NCBI GenBank assembly: GCA_964188305.1
Contig: OZ076890.1
Source of the DNA: Podarcis bocagei
Lineage: Eukaryota
Reading direction: 5' to 3' (one strand)
Length of the DNA stretch: 64,000 bases
Program-made: the position numbers and the translations under genes
Part shown: positions 15,801-64,000 of the stretch, piece by piece
How positions within the stretch are numbered: the stretch's first letter is position 1
Layout of the letters: each line of letters begins with the position of its first letter
Notes under the pieces: model-generated
Told to the model about the DNA's origin: nothing
Databases searched by the model: none
Seen by the model: the letters and a program-made list of their open reading frames with translations, nothing else

Positions 15801-18800
15801 CCTAAATTAAATTTCCTGTCTAGATTCGGGCAGTTAAAAATGTACTGCAGTTGACAGGAAGACAATGCATTCTGAAATTCAAGAACTAGTTTGTATCAAT
15901 GCACTTCTTTCCGAGAAATCTGTAATAAATAAAGAAATCCGTCCCATCCTCTGGCAAAAAATTGAGCAGGGTAGGTGCAAATATATAGTATATGGTCATA
16001 TATTTTCTCTCTCAATGCAAATCAGATTTTAAGAAAACAGCTATTTTTCAAAACGTGAAGCTTGGACATTAAATATTCATTTGGGTATCTAGCTTCATAT
16101 TTGAAGTAGTTTAGAGCAGCGTTTTCCAACCGGGGGCCCCCAAGATATTCTAAGGGGGTGACAGGTGAAAATTGCATTAATGGGAGGGCAACAGCTTGAG
16201 GCTAGGGGGCCACAGAGGGAAGTAAGAAGTGAAGGGGGGGAATCAATTTTGTTTTTTTAAAAACCCCTGATCAGCTGGCTATCCACTTGGCCAATCACAA
16301 GTGGGTAAGGGAGTGGCTCGCCAGGGCCAAGTGCTCCTTTTTGCCACGTGTGTATTCTTGGAGCAGTCCTGGTTTGTTTCTGGTGTGAGAGGGCGATCAC
16401 TGATGTTCCTGTTTTGACTAGTAGAGCCCACAATCCAGAACCCCCAGGTCAGGTAAGTGCGGTGATGGGGTGGCAATGAGTAGGGCTCCAACATTTCTCC
16501 AATGAAAACAGGGACATCCTAAGTAAAAGAGGGAGAATCCACGATCAAATGAAAAACCAGGACGGCCTCACTAAATCAGGGACATCCCTGGAAAATAGGG
16601 ACACTTGGAGGGTCTGGACTCACTAAACAATTCATCCAGCATGCTGAGTTTCTCTTAACTAGCTGTGTGTGGAAAAGGGGGCGGGGAACAGCACTTAAAA
16701 CAAACTAGAAGAATCTCTACTTTTATTTTCCCACAAACTAGCAGTTGATGAATCAAGGGCAGAATTTTCTGTGCACATTCAAACAAACATTGGTAATTAC
16801 ACATCTAAAATAGATCAAGTCAAAGGTAACACAATTGGCAACCTGCAGTCATGCCAGTTTAGACAATAGAAGACAATCCCACGTGGAACTGTAATTACTT
16901 CATTAAAACATGTGACACCAGCCTCAAGAGCTGCATTTCTCTCTTGGGTAATTTTCTCTTCGGAAGTATTTGCTGCTGGGAATCCCACATACGTCCTCTA
17001 GTCCTTTCATGGAGGACACACATCACTTGAAGAAAACAAGACTTCAAACTAAGTGTATATTTGACTTATTCTGCTGTTGGTGCTTGCAGAAAACCATAAT
17101 GGTATCTGCCAAATGTTATCATTCTGACTGACAGCATTTTTCATTCTGTGTTGACAAAATACTAGCGCACAAGTCAATGTTGTTAGAAGCCATGTAACTT
17201 ACTACAGATCTTGAATTACAGAACAGATGGGACAGTGCTCCTCCATCTTTGTTGTATGCAGAGGGAGCACCCTGGATCTGGGCCCAAACTACTATATCCA
17301 TTGTTACGGGTTCTAGGTTATGTATCAAGCAGAAAATGCTCCTCCGTCCATGCTCTAATTAAGGGAGTGTTTTGAGTCAGTATTACCCCAAGCCAGAACT
17401 GATCTTCTGATGGGATTTTAGTTTTGCATAGACTGAAGAAAGGAAAAGTCACAGTCAGCACAAAAAGACTTTTTAACAATCTACACTGGTTTTTTCCAAT
17501 AGTCTGAAAAAGTTTTCTTCATAAACCTGGTCATAGTAAGAAAGAAAAAAAGTGTTCTGGGCAACTTTGATAAGAACTCCCTGTCCCTGAGTGCCTTCCG
17601 GGTGTTAAAGCCCGATTAGAAGTCCTGTTGATCTTTCGCTAGAAGCTTTGCCAGACACCTCCATAGAACTGCGAAGTCCCCAAATTAAGAAGACATTACT
17701 AGTTTATTGGGGGGGTTGGGCTGTTTTATAGACTGCAACCACCTTCTTCTTAAAACAAATCTTCACAAATGTGACATTATTAGATGATATTTAAACAATA
17801 CTTAAAGTGCAGCAGTTATAGACAAATGTAACATTTCTATAGGTTATCAGGCCCTAATGCAGATCACAGCTGATTCCATTCAAAGAAACATGGCAAGTAA
17901 TGAGCAAAATATTTATATTTTATTTCTGAAATAGCACAGCTAAGCCTTATGACTTACAACTTTACATTTCTGGGGTCTGTTTGTTTGTCACAGCAATAAA
18001 CACATTCGGTTAGGTTATATAACTAGTAGTAGCACTCAGTCATTCACAGTTGGGCCCCGATACTATTTCTTTTTTTCCTCCTTGGTTCACGAGACCCATT
18101 TCTGGTTGGGAGACAGCTGTTTTATTTATCATACTCATCTGTGAGCCTTTGTTTCCCCTCACATTTAAGTACAAGTTGCCCCCAATTTTATCATTTCAGC
18201 AGATATGAACACTAGCCATTTTATATATAAAAAGATACAATAAAATGAAATCTTCCTCCAAAATTATGAATCAGATTCATTCGAGTTTTTCTGATGACAG
18301 TGTTTAAAATTTAATAAAGAATGGTCCTCCACCAGTAAAAGCACATGAAATGAACTTAGGAACATAGAAAGTTGCCTTATACAGAGTCAGACCACTGTGG
18401 TTCATTTTGCACTGCATCCTGCCACACTGCTATAGAGCAATAAATCCATCCACACAGCTAGGAACTATGTAAACCCTGTGATGTTTAGTTTTTCTTGATT
18501 CCTTTATTGAGAAAGGAACTTGAAACAAACACAGGAGTCTCATTTGATCCAAGAAAAGTCTCATGTTTGACATGTTTGGCTTGAATTTGGAGACATGAGC
18601 ACCTATTGCATGTGCTGAACATAAAGGCTTTGCAGTGAATCAGCACACTGAAGACAACCAAGAGAACCAATATATGTTTGCCCTTGACTTCATTAGATTT
18701 ATTCAGGAGTAAGCAGTTTGGGCATAGAAACACACACTACAGTCTCTCTGAAGGCCAAGGAGTGTTATGCTATCTAAGATGCATATTTATTCCTTTAAAA

Positions 18801-22585: not shown

Positions 22586-23444
22586 AACCCAGATGACTTC
22601 AAATCCAGAATGATGTACATGACAAAAACAAAATAAACCCCGCAGTTCTAACCAGCCTGTACCTGCAAGATGACAACATTGAAGCCACAGCAACTAACAG
22701 CCCCCAAAGGGAAGAGAAATTGTCACTGAAGCTTGCGGGGAAAGATGCATACAAGTAAGTTGCCACGCTATACAAAAAAACAACCTCCGCAGGTCAACTG
22801 TCTATAAATATAGAAATAAACCCCACCAGAGGCATCCATTCGAAACGGAAAGAAATAAAACAACAGAGAGATTTCTTACCAAAGCAAAGGAAATGCTGAA
22901 GCTGCCAATCAAGATTGGTTAATTCCTGAGAAACCAAACTCCAGGTCCCCTTTTCCTTCCCATTCGGTGGATCAACACGCAACTAATTAAAGCGAGGGTT
23001 GATCCACCCCAGCAAAGCTCCGATTAAAAGAGGCAACCACTGACCCAGCTTTAGCGCCGGCTCTGGGTCACTTTTGCAGAAGTGTCCCTCCTCCTCCTCG
23101 TCGTCGTCCCCCCGCCCCCTCCGCTCTAGCTGTAATGAATTAACTCGTCGCTTTTGACCCGCTGGGTATTATCTCCTTCGCTCTTTGAGCGTTTCTAGCC
23201 GGCCAACAGCTGGGCTACGTTTGATCTAGATAATGGGTTGCTCTTGGCCCCCGTTTCGTTTGTTTTCAACACAACACACAACAACACATAGAGCAAGCCA
23301 CCAGCCCCCAAGGCGAGAGCGACGTCAAAGACAGACATACTGTAACAGTTCAAGTATGGGGGATTTGGGTGCGGGGGGTGCTGTCCCTTCAAAGTCGCAT
23401 ACTAAGCTCAGGTTCTCCGATTCCACCTCCTTGCCTACACACAC

Positions 23445-23446
<2 letters not shown>

Positions 23447-23478
<32 letters not shown>
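23447..23478. repeat. (CA)n microsatellite
   Basis: Direct reading. Confidence 0.9.
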
Positions 23479-23480
<2 letters not shown>

Positions 23481-23635
23481 CTCTCCCCGTCTTGTCCATG
23501 GGTCATTCAGAGCAGATGGTATATGCAAGCAAGTCAAGGGTCCTGTCATGGCCAGGGATGGGGCGCAGGGTCAAGATCGCTCTGCGCAGCTGTGCTTGTC
23601 CCAATCCTACGGAAGCAAAGGGGCGCCCAACTTAC

Positions 23636-23677
23636 CAAAGCGGTGCCCACTGAGAAAGCGGCCATCAGGCATGCCAT
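23636..23677 (-). CDS. ABCG1: ABCG1 coding exon 1
   Basis: ATG at 23677; encodes MACLMAAFSVGTAL (human MACLMAAFSVGTAM); GTAAG donor at 23635-23631; phase 0 joins exon 2. Confidence 0.97.
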
Positions 23678-24100
23678 GTGCCCCCGGAGGCTGCAACCAG
23701 CGCAGGAGAAAAGATCAGCAGCAGGAGGAGAAGCACACACAAAACAAACCGCAAAAAAGAAGAAGAGAGGAGGAGATCCAGAGCAACTGCAGCAGCCTGA
23801 GAGCGAGGCGTCGCGGCTGGGGCAAAATCGACTGGAAGCAGCACCTAAAAGAAAAGGGGGGAGCACGAGAGAGAGAGAGAGAGAGGAGGCGGGGCCTCTC
23901 TGGGTACCGGCTGCTTGTTTACTTAGCCTGCCCTCTCTCGGCGTCCCACTGGCTCTCCCACTGGCTCTCCCTCGTTCCCGATTGGCTGAGGGGCCGCCGG
24001 GGGCGTGACTTGCCTCTTGCCCGTAAACGTGCTCTTGTTTTCCTCCTGCCCTGAGCGGCGTTGCGTGGCGTTGGCGGGGTCCTGACGCGCCCCCCTACTT
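23678..24100 (-). promoter_or_regulatory. ABCG1: ABCG1 5' UTR and CpG-island promoter
   Basis: CpG-rich; CCAAT box (ATTGG 23981-23985), GC boxes (~23888, ~24000), forkhead motif TGTTTAC (23916-23922), (GA)n tract; no TATA seen. Confidence 0.75.
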
Positions 24101-27300: not shown

Positions 27301-29609
27301 TGAAAGGACATCTCTTGCAGTAAGTTCTGTTTGTTGGGGCTATGGATTTCAGGTAAGCGATTAGGAGGATTATCTACCCATCTTACCATTTTGTTCCTTG
27401 TTCTTCAGAGGCATTTATTTGCACATTTAAAACATTATACATCTGGATCCTGACACAAGCAATTTTTCTGAGGGGACATCTGAGATTGTTCTCAGTTTTT
27501 TTTAAAAAAAAACCCCACACACATTTTAATGTTTGTTGTTTATGTTTTCACTGAATTTCATTTTTTTTAAAAAAAATCACAAACTTCTTGAGTACCCCTT
27601 CCAAATAGCAGCATTAGAAAAAGATAGAAAGCTAAAAACTCGTCTCTGTACTTCGGATAATTGCATGGCAGTTTAGGCTTCTAAAGTGAATCTGCACCCA
27701 TTTCTCCTCCAAGGTCTAAATGCTTTTTACAATTTGTGTTCCAAGTGAGTATTGTAAATAATGCTTTGATATTTTAACAATGAAAACACAGGGAAAGTAA
27801 TTACTTAAGCCATTATGAAAGAAGTGCAGAGTGCATAATATATTGCCAAAAGTGAAAGGGGGGGAAAGCTTGGGGAAAATACAAATAAATTAACTACCAT
27901 GGCAACACATTTCTGGGGGGAAACACATTTTTTTAATTTCCAACTCTTAGATTATTTTTTCTACTCCCAAGTTCTTGTTCAAAATAACGAATCTGTTTCA
28001 CACTTGAAAATTTGTTTAACTTATCCATTGAAATTAATAGACATAACAGGGCCGGGTTTGATTTGGTCTCATGCAGGGAAATCCTATGCATATTTACTCA
28101 GATGTAAATTCCACTGTGTCCAATGGCTCTCAGTCCTTAGTCTGTGTGTTTAAGACTGCTGTCATAATCAGTGCTATTTTTCAAGAAAAAGAGGTGCTGA
28201 AACTCACAATGAACGCCTCCCTTGTTCCAGCATTGAAGTAAGATTTATCCACCACCAGCCTCCTTAGTTTCTGTGCATCAAATGGGCAGGGGAAGAATCC
28301 TGTTCACCTCAGAAAGTGAAATATCTTAGGTCAACCATGAACTCTGTCCATTATTTTTCTACTATATTTTCACTTCTGCTATATCTGTCTAGGCAGTGTT
28401 TTCCATAGAAGCACTAAGGTATGGATGTAACAATGCCTTATCACACTAGAAATGTCAAATCGACTTCCGGGTTAGCGCCTCCGGCAATGGCGGATTTCCT
28501 CTGATTGGGAGGAATCCGCTCCGTGGAATTTAGGGTCTGAACCGCCACGGTGAGGCGGAGACCCATTAAAAACCACAGGCGGGAGAAGCCTGTGGATGTG
28601 GGATTCAGCTGGCACCTTTTGCGCCTCCCCTACTCGCGGGGAAACCCGGTTTTGGGGATCCGGAGCGATGTGGGGTGAGCGGCACGGTGCTTCGAATCGA
28701 CTGCTTCTTTCACGGAGTGAAGCCACATTGCTGTTGCCGGAGAGCGCTGACTTTTTCCTGTGGACAATTGGACTCTAAACAACTACCCGTGAGTAGAACG
28801 GAAAATTGGATCTCTAAACCAGTGTTTCCCAACCGGTGTTCCGCGCCACACTAGTGTGCCGCGAGACGTTGCCTGGTGTGCCGTGGGAGGGAGGCGGGCG
28901 AGTCGGGCGGCGAGAGGCGGGGCGGCGGCGGCGAGGAGAGGCCGCCCAGCGCGGGGCTCTCGCCATCTGCCTGCCTGGCTGCCTGCCTGACGCGCAAACC
29001 CCCGGCGCAGGCGCCCCGCTTGTTGACACGGGAGGGGAGGGGGGAGAGGAAACGCTGCTGGTGCCGCTGCTCCTCAGCGGCGGCTCCTCCTCTCAGCCCG
29101 CCCTGCCTATATTTGCGCCAATCCCCGCCCACTAAAGCATTCGCGCCTCCCTATGGGAAGCCTTGCTGGGCGGCGGGCGCTGCTGCCTGAGAGTTCTGAA
29201 GCCACGCCCACTTTCCCAGAGACTGGCGGTTCTGAGGGATCCAGGGCAGGGCTGCCCGGGCGCTTGCTCTAATCCCGCCTTCCCTGGGAGGGAGGGACGG
29301 CGGTGGCCGCGAGCGTCCGGGGTGGGGCGCGCGCTGGCTCTCCCTGGCGGCCCCCCGTGCCTGGCGTTCTATCAGTGCGCCTCCTCTCTCTTGCCCCACC
29401 CATCCTCCACGTGCTGCGCTCTAACCCGGAGTTAGAAGCGAATTAGAACACGCCCCCCCGTGTGTGGTGTGGTTTTTTTGCTGCTCCTCTTTTTTTAAGG
29501 GCTTTTTGGCGGCTTTTGGGATGGCGTCGAGGGGTGGCGCCCACGCTCCTTGCGCGCCCGCCCCGGAGGCTCGCCCGCGCGGTAGTGCTAGAGGAGGAGA
29601 GAGGTGGGC

Positions 29610-29705
29610 ATGGCGGCTGTTTTGGAGCTGTTGCTGCAGGACGAAGTGGCAGCCAGCGCTGTCGTGCGGTGGCTGAAGGCGAGCCAGAGCCCCTGCGCCG
29701 TGGAG
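29610..29705 (+). pseudogene. CDAN1: transposon-captured copy of CDAN1 (codanin-1) exon 1
   Basis: GGCATGG Kozak; encodes MAAVLELLLQDEVAASAVVRWLKASQSPCAVE then GTAAAA donor. Compare the human codanin-1 N-terminus [30 protein letters not shown] (recalled). Too short to appear in the ORF track. Confidence 0.85.
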
Positions 29706-30339
29706 GTAAAACGCGCAGCGCCGCCCTTGCTTCACCCAGCCCTCGGTTCGAGTGGGAAGTTTCCGGGAAAACGGAGTTGATGCCGGCCTTCAAAACTCTG
29801 CACTCCAAAAGGGAGGCGGGAGGGGGAAAAAACAGGTCGACCACTTGAGGTTTCCTCCTCTGGCGGGATGCTAAGTGGGAAGCTGCAGCCTTCAGGCCTG
29901 CGCTATGTGAACTCCTGAAGGGCTCTTGCGGTAGCTTTTCGGGAGCCCAGGTGTATATATGTGCCCCCCTGAGGGAGCCCTTCACTGAACCTGAGAACCC
30001 TGCTGTGGAGTTGGTGGGACTGAGTTGCTGTGTGCCCTTACGAATCCTTCCCAAATGCAGCTTTAATGATTCAGAAACAAGACCTACAGAATTCGTTGGA
30101 AGTTGCAAATAACCGTGCACAGGATTTCAGTCGTAGTCGAAATCACATTGACGCCTCTCTTCTGCACATGTGTGAACGACTATAATTTTCAAAGCGGTCT
30201 AGATGCACTAAATATCGTGGAGGGGGGACTGGTACACAGGAGATCAGGCATCGAAAAGTTTTAGTCTTTGGTCTACCTGAAGCACGGTGTTGGGTAACGT
30301 GCCCCACATAGGCACACGCGGGGCGGCGAGCGAGCTCCC

Positions 30340-30512
30340 TCCCACATCCCATCGCCGCTCGCTTCGGCCGGCCTACTGGGCTGTCGCAGGCGGAAGGCCT
30401 GCGCATGCGCAAGGTTTTCGCGCCTTCGGGATTCCCTTCACGCCTTCCTCCTCCCGGGTCCTTGAGAGCGCGGGAAGCGGCAGCGCGAGACCGGCGTTGA
30501 GCCTGGTAGGTA
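30340..30512 (+). promoter_or_regulatory. captured housekeeping-type promoter and non-coding first exon
   Basis: ETS-like GCGGAAG, perfect NRF1 palindrome TGCGCATGCGCA (30400-30411), CpG-rich leader ending at CTG|GTAGGT (30506). Confidence 0.55.
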
Positions 30513-31494
30513 TTGCGCTTGCCAAGGCAGTCATTTGGGAAATGAAAACTTGCAAAGCAAGCAACCAGTTCAATCTGAAGTACGTGTATGCTTAATATCC
30601 TGTATCTGAAACCTGTTCTGCCCCCTCCCCCACACTTGGTGCCATTTTCATCTACACATGCAGCAGAGTAAGTTGACCCAGAATAGTACCAATTCAGATG
30701 GCAGATGGGAGAATGACAGTGCTGAATGCTTTCCCATGTAGAACAGTCCCTGCAAATAAAAACCTAGCATATTTGGAAGAGGGATGCTAGCCTAACCATT
30801 ACCTTCTATGCTGTTACTATTTTTTTATTTTTTTTTACATAAGCAAAAAGTGACCTTTCCCCATCTGGCATGGTGGTGTGCCTCGAGATTTTTTTCATGA
30901 AACAAGTGTGCCTTTGCCCAAAAAAGGTTGGGAAACACTGCTCTAAACATCTTAATTTGGCATCGAAACGGGAAGGTTTCAAACAGGAAGTCCGCCTTCC
31001 TCTTTTGTAAATAGATTGAAGCAAAGACATTGCAAGCTAAAGCCTGGAAAGTCTTTTGTAAAGGACTAAATCTTCATCGGTTAAAATTACTAAACCCCCC
31101 TTGGAAGCAGGAGAAGAGGGGGGAAATTTTAGATAGTTTAAGCCTGCAGGAGAGAGAGTGAAGAAACATAAATTACCACCGTTTCGAACCTGGGAACGGG
31201 CTGCCAGTAAGATTGACGTTTTGGGAAAGTTCATTGACTGTGAATAAAATGTATGTTGACAGATAGTTAAATAAGAGAAATATATTGTTTCCATTGTTTC
31301 CTTTTGCACTTAAAAAGGAGCAAAAAGTAACTGAAAATAACTTTGTTGCTGGATCTGCGCTTAAACGGATGAATACAAATAGAAATTGTTTCCCCTAGAG
31401 GGAGCCTTTGAAACTGTTGCAGGAGTGGAGCTGGGGAATTTTCCAGCTGCAGAGATTAAAGACCGTGAGAATCAGAAATTGACCTTGGACAAGA

Positions 31495-32157
31495 ATGTTG
31501 ACAGAAGAAGCCTTAGTGATTGCATTTTGTAAGACAAGTGCTTTACTGGAACAGCTTCATGAGAAGACGGATGTGATGATTATTAAAATTGACAATTTGG
31601 GACAAAAAATGACTGATTTGGGACAAAAAGTGAATACCTATACAGAAACTACTCAGGAATTGATTCAGGAATCTGTTTTGATTGTGGAGAAGACGAAGGA
31701 GAAAGTTGTTGTTGAACCTCAAGTAATTCAAGTGAAGAGAGCCCCGGCCTCACAGAGGCAATTTGATGAACATAAGCTGTTGCCTTTTACGATCAAATCT
31801 AGAGAAAGTCAGATTTGGTGGGATGGAGCCCCGCTTGGATTGGAGAAGGAAAGTTGGATAGATCCCTTTATGCAGGGATGTTTTGGCCTTTGGGATCTGG
31901 ATTTGGGTCAGGGGGAGATTGGCGCTCTGAAATACCTTTTGGACTTTAGTTCTGACTATGGAGAATGGGCTGACCTGTCGAGAAGGAATAAAGACATTGT
32001 TAGGTTGGAGCTTCCCCGAGATCTACTCCTCAGTGCCAAAGGAAGGAAATTAAGATCAGCAGAAGATAAAGTAAAGTGCATGTATAAATATGAAGAAGAT
32101 CTGCAGAAGGGACATGGAAAAGAGTTAAGAGCCTCGGACAGAAGGGCACCAGGTTGA
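31495..32157 (+). CDS. 220-aa ORF1-like protein of the L1-derived element
   Basis: Open 220 codons; N-terminal heptad/coiled-coil pattern (LEQLHEKTDVMIIKIDNLGQKMTDLGQKVNTYTETTQELIQE); lies in the ORF1 position after the 5' UTR. Confidence 0.55.
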   Translation: MLTEEALVIAFCKTSALLEQLHEKTDVMIIKIDNLGQKMTDLGQKVNTYTETTQELIQESVLIVEKTKEKVVVEPQVIQVKRAPASQRQFDEHKLLPFTIKSRESQIWWDGAPLGLEKESWIDPFMQGCFGLWDLDLGQGEIGALKYLLDFSSDYGEWADLSRRNKDIVRLELPRDLLLSAKGRKLRSAEDKVKCMYKYEEDLQKGHGKELRASDRRAPG

Positions 32158-32762
32158 TGGACCATATAGAATTGATAGAAAGGACTGACAGAATCCGAGA
32201 CCAGGGAGAAGAGACGGTGGAAGAAGATTGGAAAAAAAGTTTTTTAAAAAAATTATTTAGAGAAATGTTGCAAAATTAATGAGTGTTAGAAAAATGTTGG
32301 AATGAAATTATATGGCTTTAGTAGAAATGTTATAAGGAGTTAAGTATAAATAAGTTTTAGGGTTTTAATGGTAAGATAAGGTTAAAATAAATTAAGATAA
32401 TTAAATGACAGAAAACATTGAAAGATGGAAAGGATTTGCTGAAATAATTAATAACTAGAACACAAAAAGGGAGGTGTGAGGAGGTCGATGAAACAAGTTA
32501 ATGAAAGATAAAGATATGGAAATATTGGATGTGTTTTTAACTGTTTTTGATTTTGTTTTTGTTTTGATGTATTGTGTCTTTTGCTTTTTTATATGTACTG
32601 TAATGTATTGATTTGTATTGTTTATTTTTTCTCTTTTTCTTATTTCTTTCTTTAATTCTTAAACTTTTAATAAATATTATTTTTTAAAAAATAGAAATGT
32701 CAAATCAGTGTACAAAAAAGGGCTATGAAATTAATGAAATTCAGGTTTGTGCATTTATAAGG

Positions 32763-32808
<46 letters not shown>
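32763..32808. repeat. (AAT)n microsatellite at the tail of a SINE/LINE remnant
   Basis: Direct reading. Confidence 0.9.
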
Positions 32809-32809
<1 letters not shown>

Positions 32810-33561
32810 TAATTTATATTCCTCCCTCCCCAGCCAAAGCCGGGCTCAGAGCGGCTAACAGCAGTAAAATAATACAGCATTCTAAAATCAATTCATTATA
32901 AATGAATAGGATGTAATCCTATTTACAGTTTTCACATTGCTGTGCTATTTTCCAAATAAGAAAATTATTTCTTTACAATTCTATTTATATTTAAGTATTT
33001 CTAGTTATAAGGAAGGGGTGGGAAACTGACTCTTCAGAAGTTTGACTGTAACTCCCATCATCCCTATGTTGGCTGGGACAGATGGGACTTTGAGTCCGGC
33101 AGATCTGGAAGGTCGTAGGTGCCTGATTCCTGTGATAAATTAGGCTAGATTCTCACACTGAAATGAGGTGTCATCACAGCATGAAAACAGCGGAATCATC
33201 TGGGATCTAATAACAAGAAGGCAGTGTTAAATAAAAGTTAGATTTATTTAGCATCACCACACGAAGTCTGTGGTATCAAAAAGAATAATAAAATAGCATT
33301 CTAATTAAGACATTGATTTAGCTTAGCTATCAAGTATAGAGAGAACCTTTCAAGTAGAGAGAGAAGTCTCATAAGGAGCAAAGACTTTTTTCTTTTCCTT
33401 AGCTGGCAAGATGCAAAATGTATTGTTTTATGTATATATGCCTCATCTTTGCCAGCAGAGGAAAAGAAAATAGCTTTTGCTCATTAAAATGATCAGCTGA
33501 TCAGTCAAGCAGACAAACAAGCCCATTAGAGAAAACGATAGACAAGTTCAATGGTGTAGAC

Positions 33562-33696
33562 CAGAGTTTCCCAAACTTGGGTCTCCAGCTGTTTTGGACT
33601 ACAATTCCCATCTTCCCTGACCATTAGTTCTGCTAGCTAGCGATGATGGGAGTTGTAGTCGAACAGCAGTTGGAGACTGAAGTTTGGGGAACCCTG
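33562..33696. mobile_element. palindromic hAT MITE
   Basis: Exact 8-bp TSD GTGTAGAC (33554-33561 / 33697-33704); hairpin body. Confidence 0.9.
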
Positions 33697-56193: not shown

Positions 56194-57434
56194 CTAAACA
56201 AAACAAAAACAAAAATACACATCTGATGTCAAAGGTGCATTTCAACAACTCTGGAAATATTCGCAAAATGTTAAATATGATGGGGGGGAGAATATGTTAT
56301 TTTGCTGAGTTTCTGCTATGGTTGAATTCTTACTCCCACTTCAAAAAAGTAAATCCAGTGAATAAATGGTAAATTCTAGCTTTAATAAGCCTTCCAAAAA
56401 CAACATAAACCAGAAGGGGAAAAAATAAGGAATATAAAGAGATTCTGGGGCGCCATATCACAGTATGTATATGAGAGGGTGGGAAATTTGCAGCAACGGT
56501 ATAATCAAGCCCTCAAACAACTTTTTCTAACCCTCCCACCCCCCAAACCCCTGGTTTTGTTGCTGTAAACATCAAAGTGACATACTGCTCAGGTGAATGT
56601 AGAGATTTAACCCACTCTGCCAATGCCATGATGGATTTGCAAAGATGTCCCTGAAACTTCACACATCACATCAATCATCTGAGGAGCAGGAAGGGATTGA
56701 TAAACCCACTCCTCAGCAGATTTTCATGGATTGGAGAAAAGAGAAGCCATTTGTATGTGTGCACACCTGAGTGAGTCTGTGTGTGCATGTATGTATGTGT
56801 GTGTGTGCTTCTGGCTTTTCTTATAAGGGCATGCAAAATGTGTGTGTGTGTGTGTGTTTAGGATTGCCAGGCGGCCGAACCCACTGTTGACCACATGTAC
56901 TGCTCCTCTTGGATAGAAGTTATTCAATATGTCACACTGCACTCACAATGTAAAATAACAAAATAGCATAGCATACCCATGTGGGACTTACTACAAAATA
57001 TTATGGTAAGGAATAGAGCCATGTAGACTATTCCATTCCATTCCATTGCATTCCCTCCTTCACTATTTTTCTACCATCCACCTATGAAAGTAAGTAAGCA
57101 TTCCATGACCAGGAAGCATTCTTCACCCAATTTAATATTGTGCTCCAGGGATCTTCTATTCCACAGCATATGCAAAGTGAGACAAGAAATAGAGCCTCCC
57201 TGAGGATGGTGCAGTCTGACCCATATAAGGGCTGGGGGCAGAAAACAAGAGTGATCTTTCTATATATGAAGGGGGGGGAAGAATTTTAAATATATATTCT
57301 AATTGGGCAAAGACAAGAAATTAAGGGGTACTGTAAATTAAAATATAATTTGTAAAGACAAAAAATGGTAGTGCAAATTTGATACACAGTTAAAAAGAAC
57401 ATCAAATATTATAAAAAAAATCTAATACACTCAC

Positions 57435-60400
57435 AGCATTCTTCAGGCATTTTGGTAGAGGGTACTGGGTGGGGTGTTTTCACAGAAGAGAATACCTCTG
57501 GCTTATGGGATGTCATTGAAAAGTCACTTAGAGAAGTTCTGGCCAAGGTTCTGGAAACTGCTGTACTTTCTGTGAGAGAATCATTCCTAATAGTGTGCGG
57601 AGAGGATACAGAGGAGGTCTGTGCACTTCCCAAAGATGTGCTGGATGAAGCCATAACAGAGGAAATGGATGCTGGGCCTCTGGGCCGAGTGGCAGCCGAG
57701 CTCCCTATTGCCACTGGTGCTGCAGAGCTGTTGTCAGCAGTGTGGGTGGTGCTCCTCAACGATGTAGCAGGCATCCCCGTTGGTGATAGTGGAGAGGTGA
57801 CATGAGCTGCGGCGGCTGAGCTGGATTCCACGGAGGTGTCCCGCACTCCGCTAGGAGAGGTCTGCCCGCTTTCCGAAGACGCGCTGGATGAAGCCATGCT
57901 GGAGGCACTGGATGCTGGGCCTGCCGTCCAAGTGGTAGCCGGGCTCTCTGTTGCCACTGGTGCTGCGGAGCTGTTGTCAGCAGTGTGGGTTGTGGCCGAG
58001 AACACACTTGTCCCTGAGATAACGGGAGATGTTTCTAAAGAAACGTGCTCCGTGGTGGTCCGCTGAGGTAGCGCTTCAGAGCTGGAGGATGCCATGCTCC
58101 CGGAGGGTCCAGATGATATGTCAGACTCTGTCGTGGAAAAAGAGGAGACTTCCAGCTTGCCTGTTCCCGTACTTGATAAGCCGGCCGAGGTGCTGGGACC
58201 AGCTGCGCTTTCTGTCCCGGAAGAACTAGCCGTCATGTGGGAAGAGGTTGCGGAGCCCTCCACCTGTGGAGAACTTGGGCTTCTGGAGAAGGACGCAGCA
58301 GGGGAACCGGTGGTCCCACCCACGCTTGTGGCTGGCGCTGCAGAGCTCTGGCCGCTCAGGGTGATTGCAGCTTCCGAGGAGGCTGTCTCTTTAGTCGGGG
58401 TGGCTGCATTCGTACTGGTTCTCCTCAACGATGCAGAAGGCGTCCCCGTTGGTGCTAGTGGAGAGGTGACGTGAGCTGTGGCGGCTGAGCTGGATTCCAC
58501 GGAGGTGTCCCGCACTCCGCTAGGAGAGGTCTGCCCGCTTTCCGAAGACGCGCTGGATGAAGCCATGCTGGAGGCACTGGATGCTGGGCCTGCCGTCCAA
58601 GTGGTAGCCGGGCTCTCTGTTGCCACTGGTGCTGCGGAGCTGTTGTCAGCAGTGTGGGTTGTGGCCGAGAACACACTTGTCCCTGAGATCCCGGGAGATG
58701 TTTCTGAAGAAACTTGCTCCGTGGTGGTCCGCTGAGGTAGCGCTTCAGAGCTTGAGGATGCCGTGCTCCCGGAGGGTCCAGATGATATGACAGACTCTGT
58801 CGTGGAAAAAGAGGAGACTTCCAGCTTGCCTGTTCCCGTACTTGATAAGCCGGCCGAGGTGCTGGGACCCACTGCGCTTTCTGTCCCGGAAAAACTAGCA
58901 GTCATGTGGGAAGAGGTTGCGGAGCCCTCCACCTGTGGAGAACTTGGGCTTCTGGAGAAGGACGCAGCAGGGGAACCGGTGGTCCCAGCCACGCTTGTGC
59001 CTGGCGCTGCAGAGCTCTGGCCGCCCAGAGTGCTTGCAGCTTCCGAGGAGGCTGTCTCTTCAGTCGGGGTGGCTGCATTCGGAGTGGTGCTCCTCAACAA
59101 TGCAGAAGGTGTCCCCGTTGGTGCTAGTGGAGAGGTGACGTGAGCTGTGGCGGCTGAGCTGGATTCCACGGAGGTGTCCCGTACTCCGCTAGGAGAGGTC
59201 TGCCCGCTTTCCGAAGACGCGCTGGATGAAGCCATGCTGGAGGCACTGGATGCTGGGCCTGCCGTCCAAGTGGTAGCCGGGCTCTCTGTTGCCACTGGTG
59301 CTGCGGAGCTGTTGTCAGCAGTGTGGGTTGTGGCCGAGAACACACTTGTCCCTGAGATCCCGGGAGATGTTTCTGAAGAAACGTGCTCCGTGGTGGTCCG
59401 CTGAGGTAGCGCTTCAGAGCTGGAGGATGCCGTGCTCCCGGAGGGTCCAGATGATATGACAGACTCTGTCGTGGAAAAAGAGGATACCTCCAGCTTGCCT
59501 GTTCCCGTACTTGATAAGCCGGCCGAGGTGCTGGGACCCACTGCGCTTTCTGTCCCGGAAGAACTAGCCGTCATGTGGGAAGAGGTTGCGGAGCCCTCCA
59601 CCTGTGGAGAACTTGGGCTTCTGGAGAAGGACGCAGCAGGGGAACCGGTGGTCCCACCCACGCTTCTGCCTGGCGCTGCAGAGCTCTGGCCGCCCAGAGT
59701 GCTTGCAGCTTCCGAGGAGGCTGTCTCTTCAGTCTGGGTGGCTGCATTTGGAGTGGTGCTCCTCAACGATGCAGAAGGCGTCCCCGTTGGTGCTAGTGGA
59801 GAGGTGACGTGAGCTGTGGCGGCTGAGCTGGATTCCATGGAGGTGTCCCGTACTCCGCTAGGAGAGGTCTGCCCGCTTTCCGAAGACGCGCTGGATGAAG
59901 CCATGCTGGAGGCACTGGATGCTGGGCCTGCCGTCCAAGTGGTAGCCGGGCTCTCTGTTGCCACTGGTGCTGCGGAGATGTTGTCAGCAGTGTGGGTTGT
60001 GGCCGAGAACACACTTGCCCCTGAGATCCCAGGAGATGTTTCTGAAGAAACGTGCTCCGTGGTGGTCTGCTGAGGTAGCGCTTCAGAGCTGGAGGATGCC
60101 GTGCTCCCGGAGGGTCCAGATGATATGACAGACTCTGTCGTGGAAAAAGAGGAGACTTCCAGCTTGCCTGTTCCCGTACTTGATAAGCCGGCCGAGGTGC
60201 TGGGACCCGCTGCGCTTTCTGTCCCGGAAGAACTAGCCGTCATGTGGGAAGAGGTTGCGGAGCCCTCCACCTGTGGAGAACTTGGGCTTCTGGAGAAGGA
60301 CGCAGCAGGGGAACCGGTGGTCCCACCCACGCTTGTGGCTGGCGCTGCAGAGCTCTGGCCGCTCAGGGTGATTGCAGCTTCCGAGGAGGCTGTCTCTTTA

Positions 60401-63400
60401 GTCGGGGTGGCTGCATTCGTACTGGTTCTCCTCAACGATGCAGAAGGCGTCCCCGTTGGTGCTAGTGGAGAGGTGACGTGAGCTGTGGCGGCTGAGCTGG
60501 ATTCCACGGAGGTGTCCCGCACTCCGCTAGGAGAGGTCTGCCCGCTTTCCGAAGACGCGCTGGATGAAGCCATGCTGGAGGCACTGGATGCTGGGCCTGC
60601 CGTCCAAGTGGTAGCCGGGCTCTCTGTTGCCACTGGTGCTGCGGAGCTGTTGTCAGCAGTGTGGGTTGTGGCCGAGAACACACTTGTCCCTGAGATCCCG
60701 GGAGATGTTTCTGAAGAAACTTGCTCCGTGGTGGTCCGCTGAGGTAGCGCTTCAGAGCTTGAGGATGCCGTGCTCCCGGAGGGTCCAGATGATATGACAG
60801 ACTCTGTCGTGGAAAAAGAGGAGACTTCCAGCTTGCCTGTTCCCGTACTTGATAAGCCGGCCGAGGTGCTGGGACCCACTGCGCTTTCTGTCCAGGAAAA
60901 ACTAGCAGTCATGTGGGAAGAGGTTGCGGAGCCCTCCACCTGTGGAGAACTTGGGCTTCTGGAGAAGGACGCAGCAGGGGAACCGGTGGTCCCAGCCACG
61001 CTTGTGCCTGGCGCTGCAGAGCTCTGGCCGCCCAGAGTGCTTGCAGCTTCCGAGGAGGCTGTCTCTTCAGTCGGGGTGGCTGCATTCGGAGTGGTGCTCC
61101 TCAACAATGCAGAAGGTGTCCCCGTTGGTGCTAGTGGAGAGGTGACGTGAGCTGTGGCGGCTGAGCTGGATTCCACGGAGGTGTCCCATACTCCGCTAGG
61201 AGAGGTCTGCCCGCTTTCCGAAGACGCGCTGGATGAAGCCATGCTGGAGGCACTGGATGCTGGGCCTGCCGTCCAAGTGGTAGCCGGGCTCTCTGTTGCC
61301 ACTGGTGCTGCGGAGCTGTTGTCAGCAGTGTGGGTTGTGGTCGAGAACACACTTGTCCCTGAGATCCCGGGAGATGTTTCTGAAGAAACTTGCTCCGTGG
61401 TGGTCCGCTGAGGTAGCGCTTCAGAGCTGGAGGATGCCGTGCTCCCGGAGGGTCCAGATGATATGACAGACTCTGTTGTGGAAAAAGAGGAGACTTCCAG
61501 CTTGCCTGTTCCCGTACTTGATAAGCCGGCCGAGGTGCTGGGACCCGCTGCGCTTTCTGTCCCGGAAGAACTAGCCGTCATGTGGGAAGAGGTTGCGGAG
61601 CCCTCCACCTGTGGAGAACTTGGGCTTCTGGAGAAGGACGCAGCAGGGGAACCGGTGGTCCCAGCCACGCTTGTGCCTGGCGCTGCAGAGCTCTGGCCGC
61701 CCAGAGTGCTTGCAGCTTGCGAGGAGGCTGTCTCTTCAGTCGGGGTGGCTGCATTCGTACTGGTTCTCCTCAACGATGCAGAAGGCGTCCCCGTTGGTGC
61801 TAGTGGAGAGGTGACGTGAGCTGTGGCGGCTGAGCTGGATTCCACGGAGGTGTCCCGCACTCCGCTAGGAGAGGTCTGCCCACTTTCCGAAGACGCGCTG
61901 GATGAAGCCATGCTGGAGGCACTGGATGCTGGGCCTGCCGTCCAAGTGGTAGCCGGGCTCTCTGTTGCCACTGGTGCTGCGGAGCTGTTGTCAGCAGTGT
62001 GGGTTGTGGCCGAGAACACACTTGTCCCTGAGATCCCGGGAGATGTTTCTGAAGAAACTTGCTCCGTGGTCGTGCCCTGAGGTAGCGCTTCAGAGCTGGA
62101 GGATGCCGTGCTCCCGGAGGGTCCAGATGATATGACAGACTCTGTCGTGGAAAAAGAGGAGACTTCCAGCTTGCCTGTTCCCGTACTTGATAAGCCGGCC
62201 GAGGTGCTGGGACCCGCTGCGCTTTCTGTCCCGGAAGAACTAGCCGTCATGTGGGAAGAGGTTGTGGAGCCCTCCACCTGTGGAGAACTTGGGCTTCTGG
62301 AGAAGGACGCAGCAGGGGAACCGGTGGTCCCAGCCACGCTTGTGCCTGGCGCTGCAGAGCTCTGGCCGCCCAGAGTGCTTGCAGCTTCCGAGGAGGCTGT
62401 CTCTTCAGTCGGGGTGGCTGCATTCGGAGTAGTGCTCCTCAACGATGCAGAAGGCGTCCCCGTTGGTGCTAGTGGAGAGGTGACGTGAGCTGTGGCGGCT
62501 GAGCTGGATTCCACGGAGGTGTCCCGCACTCCGCTAGGAGAGGTCTGCCCGCTTTCCGAAGACGCGCTGGATGAAGCCATGCTGGAGGCACTGGATGCTG
62601 GGCCTGCCGTCCACGTGGTAGCCGGGCTCTCTGTTGCCACTGGTGCTGCGGAGCTGTTGTCAGCAGTGTGGGTTGTGGCCGAGAACACACTTGTCCCTGA
62701 GATCCCGGGAGATGTTTGTGAAGAAACTTGCTCCGTGGTGGTCCGCTGAGGTAGCGCTTCAGAGCTGGAGGATGCCGTGCTCCCGGAGGGTCCAGATGAT
62801 ATGACAGACTCTGTCGTGGAAAAAGAGGAGACTTCCAGCTTGCCTGTTCCCGTACTTGATAAGCCGGCCGAGGTGCTGGGACCCGCTGCGCTTTCTGTCC
62901 CGGAAGAACTAGCCGTCATGTGGGAAGAGGTTGCGGAGCCTTCCACCTGTGGAGAACTTGGGCTTCTGGAGAAGGACGCAGCAGGGTAACCGGTGGTCCC
63001 AGCCACGCTTGTGGCTGGCGCTGCAGAGCTAGGGCTGCCCAGGGTGATTGCAGCTTCCGAGGAGGCTGTCTCTTTAGTCGGGGTGGCTGCATTCGTACTG
63101 GTTCTCCTCAACGATGCAGAAGGCGTCCCCGTTGCTGCTAGTGGAGAGGTGACGTGAGCTGTGGCGGCTGAGCTGGATTCCACGGAGGTGTCCCGCACTC
63201 CGCTAGGAGAGGTCTGCCCGCTTTCCGAAGACGCGCTGGATGAAGCCATGCTGGAGGCACTGGATGCTGGACCTGCCGTCCAAGTGGTAGCCGGGCTCTC
63301 TGTTGCCACTGGTGCTGTGGAGCTGTTGTCAGCAGTGTGGGTTGTGGCCGAGAACACACTTGTCCCTGAGATAACGGGAGATGTTTGTGAAGAAACTTGC

Positions 63401-64000
63401 TCCGTGGTGGTCCGCTGAGGTAGCACTTCAGAGCTGGAGGATGCCGTGCTCCCGGAGGGTCCAGATGATATGACAGACTCTGTCGTGGAAAAAGAGGAGA
63501 CTTCCAGCTTGCCTGTTCCCGTACTTGATAAGCCGGCCGAGGTGCTGGGACCCGCTGCGCTTTCTGTCCCGGAAGAACTAGCCGTCATGTGGGAAGAGGT
63601 TGCGGAGCCCTCCACCTGTGGAGAACTTGGGCTTCTGGAGAAGGACGCAGCAGGGGAACCGGTGGTCCCAGCCACGCTTGTGCCTGGCGCTGCAGAGCTC
63701 TGGCCGCCCATGGTGCTTGCAGCTTCCGAGGAGGCTGTCTCTTCAGTCGGGGTGGCTGCATTCGTACTGGTTCTCCTCAACGATGCAGAAGGCGTCCCCG
63801 TTGCTGCTAGTGGAGAGGTGACGTGAGCTGTGGCGGCTGAGCTGGATTCCACGGAGGTGTCCCGCACTCCGCTAGGAGAGGTCTGCCCGCTTTCCAAAGA
63901 CGCGCTGGATGAAGCCATGCTGGAGGCACTGGATGCTGGGCCTGCCGTCCAAGTGGTAGCCGGGCTCTCTGTTGCCACTGGTGCTGCGGAGCTGTTGTCA
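57435..64000 (-). CDS. giant mucin (PTS) exon, 5' end outside the window
   Basis: Single uninterrupted frame of >2180 codons, Ser/Thr/Ala/Pro-rich; ends ...KMPEEC+T|GTGAGT (phase 1, compatible with the FN3 exon). Confidence 0.95.
57750..64000. repeat. coding tandem array, 669-bp (223-aa) unit, >9 copies in window
   Basis: Equivalent ORF starts recur at 58094, 58763, 59432, 60101, 60770, 61439, 62108, 62777 and 63446; units differ only by point substitutions. Confidence 0.97.

Follow-up and report, generated by a model that had tools for sequence, protein, structure and literature searches.

In plants, Pack-MULEs reportedly favor the GC-rich 5' ends of genes, a bias attributed to Jiang et al., and in vertebrates, Thomas et al. 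are said to have described in 2014 that the Helibat Helitrons of vespertilionid bats capture promoters together with first exons. Here, we analyze a stretch of 64,000 nucleotides from the lizard Podarcis bocagei (assembly GCA_964188305.1, contig OZ076890.1; referred to as the window) and a 2121-bp element at positions 28820-30940 within it. Based on its ends, the element is classified as a non-autonomous DNA transposon of the hAT type; its interior contains a displaced copy of the promoter region and first coding exon of CDAN1, the gene for Codanin-1. An earlier interpretation of the window, made without database searches and referred to as the sequence-only reading, had drawn attention to this element.

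For animals, Tan et al. 2021 (Nat Commun 12:4280, PMC8277862) count 370 Pack-TIRs across 100 genomes; hAT elements carry 208 of these, and only four are multicopy. For instance, the frog element hAT-N8_XT captured a 5' untranslated region and was amplified to three loci. Gap filling or replication-fork switching is proposed there as the origin of animal Pack-TIRs. Pack-type capture is well documented in plants; for animals, the same paper describes it as rare and mostly single-copy. The words "lizard", "Anolis" and "reptile" are absent from the main text of that paper, a search of the literature for hAT in combination with lizard, squamate, Anolis, capture or transduplication returned no report of a lizard Pack-hAT, and no match to the terminal inverted repeat (TIR) string was found in the literature.

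Helibat Helitrons are vertebrate DNA transposons that spread host promoters and 5' exons, as the element described here may do; however, Helitrons have neither TIRs nor a target-site duplication (TSD) and capture by read-through, whereas this element has both TIRs and a TSD. With animal Pack-hATs (PMC8277862), it has in common that a TIR element without transposase encloses duplicated host DNA. It differs from them in that the cargo is larger (1.3 kb) and comprises a whole bidirectional promoter of the CpG-island type together with the coding first exon and its donor, in that this cargo is nested in a second promoter-like segment, and in that at least three structural variants exist. With plant Pack-MULEs and Pack-TYPE elements (PMC8903248), it shares TIR boundaries, a GC-rich 5' gene fragment, a retained intron and, possibly, successive acquisitions. 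By contrast, Pack-MULEs are Mutator elements with 9-11-bp TSDs and long TIRs, while this element is of the hAT type with an 8-bp TSD, a 15-bp TIR and a vertebrate host. Finally, the Ds-type derivatives of maize Ac (PMC3260210) are reported as similarly heterogeneous non-autonomous hAT elements that share only termini and subterminal repeats and have interiors reshaped by abortive gap repair. These interiors derive mostly from the autonomous element, whereas here no transposase-derived sequence is left.

Results

The element begins with the 15-bp TIR CAGTGTTTCCCAACC and ends with the reverse complement of this TIR, free of mismatches; on the outside, each TIR abuts a copy of the 8-bp TSD CTCTAAAC, the two copies being identical (Table 1). 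In a search of the window for the TIR with up to three mismatches allowed, the only matches without mismatch were the two ends of the element itself and the remaining ones were unrelated sites resembling MITEs (miniature inverted-repeat transposable elements); self-BLAST of the element and its flanks within the window likewise revealed no further copy. If all bases are taken as equally frequent, our own arithmetic gives a chance expectation per 64 kb of ~0.18 for an inverted pair of 15 bp without mismatch within 3 kb, and of ~3e-6 once the abutting 8-bp direct repeat is included.

Hallmarks of hAT transposons are an 8-bp TSD, the target pattern nTnnnnAn and a short TIR starting with CAG. Here, the TSD has 8 bp and agrees with this pattern in its second base, T, and its seventh, A, the TIR is of the short type (~10-25 bp, CAG/TAG start) and both ends have subterminal repeats. 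Specifically, the window has nine copies of the 7-mer GTGTGCC, four of which are at most 65 bp from the ends of the element, two per end. Subterminal transposase-binding repeats would be expected to show such a distribution. The TIR may also be similar to Charlie-type termini. Among 15 stop-to-stop frames from the interior, none matched a Pfam family at its cut-off, i.e. no remnant of a transposase was found; within the window, there was also no autonomous partner encoding a hAT transposase with these termini and, in 27500-33500, no known RNA family (Rfam). A MITE (less than ~800 bp, high-copy, homogeneous interior) is ruled out by the length of 2121 bp and the heterogeneous interior, and a Helitron-type capture (no TIR or TSD, 5'-TC...CTRR-3' ends, 3' hairpin) by the TIRs and TSD. 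On these features, we classify the element as a non-autonomous DNA transposon with hAT-type ends, and the description in the sequence-only reading of perfect TIRs and an exact TSD around 2121 bp without transposase is confirmed by the sequence and by Pfam.

The cargo was identified through the frame that starts at 29610. Compared with 1.84 billion representative proteins, this frame matched two short open reading frames (ORFs) from short-read assemblies and a single long protein, P0003, which carries the NCBI name Codanin-1 of Varanus komodoensis and matches the solved human Codanin-1 chains (PDB 9imz) from residue 1 (E 1.6e-82). Within the 32 codons at 29610-29705, 25 of 29 residues are identical to the N-terminus of V. 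komodoensis codanin-1 (BLASTP E 8e-15). A weak repeat match of the exon-1 peptide to P0004 on a JGI metagenome contig was taken as a chance match. Exon 1 of Varanus CDAN1 ends with GAG/GTAAA, and the annotated protein resumes in exon 2, 2.7 kb downstream. In the window, GAG is followed by GTAAAACGCGCAGC with the GT at 29706, and the same donor and following bases are present in Varanus and in a second squamate contig, L011; by this conservation, the GT at 29706 is the orthologous CDAN1 donor. Thus, CDAN1 exon 1 with its donor and the start of the intron, as named in the sequence-only reading, is borne out.

The Varanus protein has 1311 aa and is encoded by ~20 exons within 34 kb of exon 1. No other CDAN1 exon was found in the 64-kb window, where Varanus codanin-1 has matches for residues 1-41 only, and the window has no other similarity to the 55-kb Varanus CDAN1 locus, including no Myb-like gene and no STARD9. 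Because no further CDAN1 exon is in the window, exon 1 is judged to be a displaced copy, away from its gene. Two segments of the window (28989-29176 and 29407-29719) match the Varanus CDAN1 locus (SJPD01000003.1, contig L013; 5408-5578 and 5811-6114) with order, orientation and spacing preserved, and the CDAN1 locus on L011 is colinear with the same two segments. In Varanus, a Myb_DNA-bind_5 gene is arranged head-to-head with CDAN1 and a STARD9-like gene is located downstream; on L011, the same Myb-like gene is upstream of CDAN1 exon 1. Read against these loci, 28989-30293 is one contiguous 1.3-kb copy that includes the bidirectional promoter of CDAN1 and the Myb/SANT-like gene, exon 1, the donor and 588 bp of intron 1. 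The observed/expected (o/e) ratio of CpG is 0.79-1.06 in 28880-29705 and 30294-30505 compared to 0.37 for the whole window. Abutting CpG-rich blocks had been proposed before; their CpG richness stands, while the colinearity of the two segments makes them one capture and not two. Similarly, of the minus-facing promoter placed at ~28880-29135, the CCAAT box (29118, conserved in the comparison of CDAN1 promoters) remains as part of the bidirectional promoter that begins at 28989, and GC boxes are present, but the TATA-like string is not conserved. In separate observations on this gene pair, the Myb/SANT-like gene is located within 1-5262 of L013, ~740 bp from CDAN1, and 553-1218 of L011, and the squamate CDAN1/Myb intergenic promoter has blocks that are ~75% conserved across the three lizards compared.

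With TIRs and a TSD that enclose no transposase domain, and with an interior that is host-derived over 28989-30293 by its colinearity with the Varanus and L011 loci, the element is a real vertebrate Pack-type DNA transposon of a kind already described in animals, i.e. the Pack-TIRs. This agrees with the sequence-only reading, which had posited hAT-type ends on a transposase-less element carrying a displaced 5' gene region of the host; the opposite outcome considered there, an interior of degraded hAT transposase or plain repeat consensus, did not materialize for 28989-30293.

The CDAN1 copy is embedded in a CpG-rich, promoter-like outer segment (28883-28988 and 30294 to ~30875), whose left part lacks homology to the CDAN1 loci of Varanus and L011. 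In its right part, block C (30294-30505; CpG o/e 1.06) has an ETS core at 30391 and an NRF1 palindrome at 30401, ends at a GT donor-like site and has no coding frame; the motifs of the ETS/NRF1 promoter postulated earlier are present. A homologue search with the ORF in block C returned L012 only (see below), and 30506-30875 gave no Pfam match. A host origin of the outer segment is plausible, and it may instead be the family's own interior. A mosaic of several genes, as originally envisaged, is accordingly narrowed to one demonstrated host locus, CDAN1/Myb-SANT-like, and one further CpG-rich block that looks promoter-like and recurs in L012.

Sibling copies were recovered from short-read data. 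An exact look-up of P0001 returned ten short-read contigs from runs ERR139.../ERR140.... Nine contigs from nine independent short-read assemblies (L002-L010; L002-type) match 28957-30104 and continue directly from 30815 onward; they lack 30105-30814, have GTT at both breakpoints as microhomology and end before either flank of the element. L001 matches the window to 30293 and then runs into unrelated repeat-like sequence. L012, the sole Logan contig with the block C frame in the homologue search, has another flank, from which it enters the terminus of the element at the same base, with 33 of 35 bases identical. The terminus is followed by ~40 bp matching 28948-28988 and by a 10-bp filler that repeats 9 bp (CACGGGGCT) from just upstream; past the filler, L012 corresponds to 30294-30822 of the window at 99.8% identity and is without the CDAN1 part of the interior. 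Block C is present at two sites with different flanks, the window and L012, and the internal junctions of the element recur in independent short-read assemblies. These contigs define a family with at least two insertion sites and at least three interior structures, and L012 provides the copy with the same termini, a different interior and another insertion site that had been anticipated.

Further look-ups were less productive. The 104-aa ORF of L002, used as a query for more copies, returned L002 itself only, and the 44 residues encoded by the right terminus gave no candidate, a weak blank given that such short ORFs are rarely called. Exact-protein look-ups for a same-species locus or empty site gave no record for the ORFs at 29610-29777, 30809-31030, 28475-28726 and 30376-30573 or for the L012 version of the latter, and P0003 had no gene record.

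The contigs also delimit the capture. On the left, a 27-bp stretch that adjoins GACGCGCAAACC on its left side is conserved between Varanus and L011 but missing from the window, which has in its place the sequence found ahead of the filler in L012. On the right, L001 diverges after 30293 and L012 joins at 30294; aligned in this way, two independent sequences mark the right boundary (30293/30294) at the same base.

The window and the L002-type differ at 14 of 1128 aligned sites (98.8% identity) and by four indels, including one of 23 bp. Loss of a CpG in the window copy accounts for seven of the 14 differences, compared to one in the opposite direction, and, therefore, the window copy is decaying, with its CpG o/e still at 0.79-1.06. 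Across 30088-30293, the window and L001 differ at 14 of 205 sites (93.2% identity; ~7%); left of 30088, L001 is identical to the L002-type, and its left end has element-specific sequence. Should L001 represent the parental intron where it diverges, the capture may be much older than the last transpositions; because L001 is possibly chimeric, this age estimate is tentative. The youth that had been deduced from intact CpGs, TIRs and TSD is not supported as stated: with seven CpGs lost, the copy is not pristine, and with an intron ~7% distant from the best parental candidate, the capture may be much older than this insertion.

The element resides in an older retroposed unit that is CpG-rich at its 5' end; the 3' copy of the unit's 15-bp direct repeat is preceded by AATAAA and a short run of A. 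The unit has a 220-aa ORF (31495-32157), the only relatives of which are Podarcis hypothetical proteins with 45-49% identity; its identification as L1 ORF1 had no Pfam or PDB support and was rejected. The hAT element was inserted later, into the CpG-rich 5' region of this unit.

Table 1. Coordinates of the hAT-type element, its parts and its host unit in the window.
Feature	Position	Strand	Evidence
Older retroposed unit, host of the hAT insertion	28462..32691	+	15-bp direct repeat TAGAAATGTCAAATC at 28447-61 and 32692-706
Left TSD CTCTAAAC	28812..28819		Fits nTnnnnAn
Left TIR CAGTGTTTCCCAACC	28820..28834	+	0 mismatches; same terminus in L012 with other flank
Left subterminal region, two GTGTGCC (28854, 28876)	28835..28882	+	7-mer count
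Left part of outer segment, 81% GC	28883..28988		Final ~40 bp also in L012, there immediately upstream of block C
Captured bidirectional promoter, Myb/SANT-like (minus side) and CDAN1 (plus side)	28989..29609		Colinear with Varanus L013 and L011
CDAN1 exon 1, coding part, 32 codons	29610..29705	+	25/29 identical, E 8e-15
CDAN1 donor and first 588 bp of intron 1	29706..30293	+	Donor conserved in Varanus/L011; L001 colinear to 30293
Block C, CpG-island promoter-like	30294..30505	+	CpG o/e 1.06, motifs; 99.8% identical in L012
Continuation of block C, AT-richer	30506..30875		In L012 to contig end (30822); L002-type rejoin at 30815
Right subterminal region, two GTGTGCC (30876, 30906)	30876..30925	+	7-mer count
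Right TIR	30926..30940	-	0 mismatches
Right TSD CTCTAAAC	30941..30948		Identical to left copy

Discussion

We suggest a model in which the interior of the element was built in two layers. In this model, the recipient would have been an L012-like element consisting of the termini, 28883-28992 and block C. Repair of a break inside this element would have involved synthesis with a template switch to the CDAN1 locus and, in this way, the 1.3-kb CDAN1 piece would have been copied as DNA into the recipient. The left junction would have been formed via the 4-bp microhomology GACG with 10 bp of the recipient lost or replaced. This microhomology, the filler and the small loss fit, and hence suggest, repair synthesis with template switching. 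Later abortive gap repair would have given rise to the deletion variants (L002-type and L012), and transposase supplied in trans would have inserted the element into the CpG-rich 5' region of the older retroposed unit. Because the left junction is common to the L002-type contigs and the window, the former would descend from the same capture. We infer this order of events, the repair mechanism and the mobility of the CDAN1-bearing form from sequence, and we consider the explanation as a whole, i.e. a non-autonomous hAT element with a two-layer interior and CDAN1 copied into an L012-like recipient, to be probable.

Several observations weigh against this explanation. L012 carries a deletion (28855-28947) and is, therefore, no pristine progenitor. 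A CDAN1-bearing form at a second insertion site was not seen among L002-L010, which are contigs without flanks. For the CDAN1 parent in the same species, L001 is a candidate only, and the boundaries were defined with two other squamates and L001; as L001 may be a chimeric short-read contig, the support for the boundary is weakened. The assignment to the superfamily relies on the ends, the TSD and the motifs. Finally, block C differs from L012 by 0.2% and the CDAN1 block from the L002-type by 1.2%; if the L012-type predates the capture, this is the reverse of the simplest expectation. The gap between the two values has only marginal significance, and differing source populations or homogenization by repair could account for it.

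The most serious competitor of this model is that CDAN1 was copied by break repair into a resident L012-like hAT element in situ and that the CDAN1 cargo never transposed, in which case the L002-type contigs would represent this same locus, as ortholog or allele, after a later deletion. Such an origin is in line with the report by Tan et al. (PMC8277862) that animal Pack-TIRs are for the most part single-copy products of gap filling, with the existence of the recipient form (L012), and with the lack of a second insertion site of the CDAN1 form in contigs that, for L002-L010, stop short of the flanks. However, the L002-type structure and its divergence of 1.2% also fit a separate transposed copy, and the intact TIRs, TSD and subterminal motifs would leave the element competent to move; we regard an origin in situ as rather unlikely, if with appreciable weight. 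Less likely still, and improbable in our view, is a single large capture, from ~28883 to 30293 or beyond, from one host region, of which L012 would be a double-deletion derivative with filler. It is true that the deletion 28855-28947 and the 9-bp duplicated filler CACGGGGCT of L012 are typical of aberrant gap repair and that its block C is nearly identical to that of the window, but the two breakpoints of the second deletion in L012 would then have to coincide, within 0-4 bp, with boundaries that were defined independently, namely the loss of homology to Varanus and L011 at 28989 and the divergence of L001 at 30293.

Two further explanations deny any capture. If the element were an ordinary non-autonomous hAT repeat, the entire interior would be the family consensus with no host parent, as block C and 28948-28988 might indicate by recurring in a copy with the same terminus and by having no parent that we found. 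For 28989-30293, this reading is refuted: two other squamates have a conserved single-gene locus that is colinear with the region, annotated coding exon and donor included, and the region is missing from L012; overall, we judge an ordinary repeat to be very improbable. Scarcely credible is that a genuine CDAN1 promoter lies between two independent MITE insertions or that the assembly is chimeric. The CpG island does run on outside the element at the left (28501-28819), as a genuine promoter would have it, but this part is contained in a retroposed unit that has a 15-bp TSD of its own, the window contains no more CDAN1 exons, no Myb-like gene and no STARD9, and the outer sides carry an identical 8-bp TSD, while a chimera is contradicted by the same internal junctions in independent short-read assemblies.

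Returning to the model of capture by an L012-like recipient, this case is fully dissectable, with exact junctions, microhomology, siblings resembling the recipient form and later deletion products. It provides material for testing capture via repair synthesis with template switching and for asking if new promoters and chimeric transcripts arise from such elements. More generally, we speculate that a prolific hAT lineage of this lizard has a fixed internal "cargo slot", which it repeatedly fills with CpG-island promoters and their first exons before spreading these by transposition, the outer block being an earlier capture and CDAN1 a later, nested one; at present, we hold this extension as a tentative possibility, with the odds somewhat against it. 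If true, dozens of housekeeping promoters with splice donors would be scattered through the genome, in a vertebrate counterpart of plant Pack-MULEs, and with such a genome-wide pattern, Pack-type capture at the scale of a family would, in this lizard, be seen for the first time in a vertebrate.

Additional features of the window

A palindromic MITE-like element of ~135 bp at 33562-33696 has the ends CCAGAGTTTCCCAAAC ... GTTTGGGGAACCCTGG, which resemble but do not match the hAT terminus; it is assigned to a different family. At 16117-16131, a hAT-like terminus, CAGCGTTTTCCAACC, has two mismatches and no obvious partner nearby. Further CpG islands are located at 900-1500 and 23000-24100, the latter with a (CA)n run and long spurious GC-rich frames without Pfam match. 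On the minus strand, an open frame of 2189 codons (57409-63978; ~60% GC) runs off the end of the window. It matches no Pfam family, and Tandem Repeats Finder (TRF) missed its repeat, probably because the period exceeds 500 bp. With its Ser/Thr/Ala-rich repeats of ~220 residues, this frame has the look of a mucin-like gene's giant central exon.

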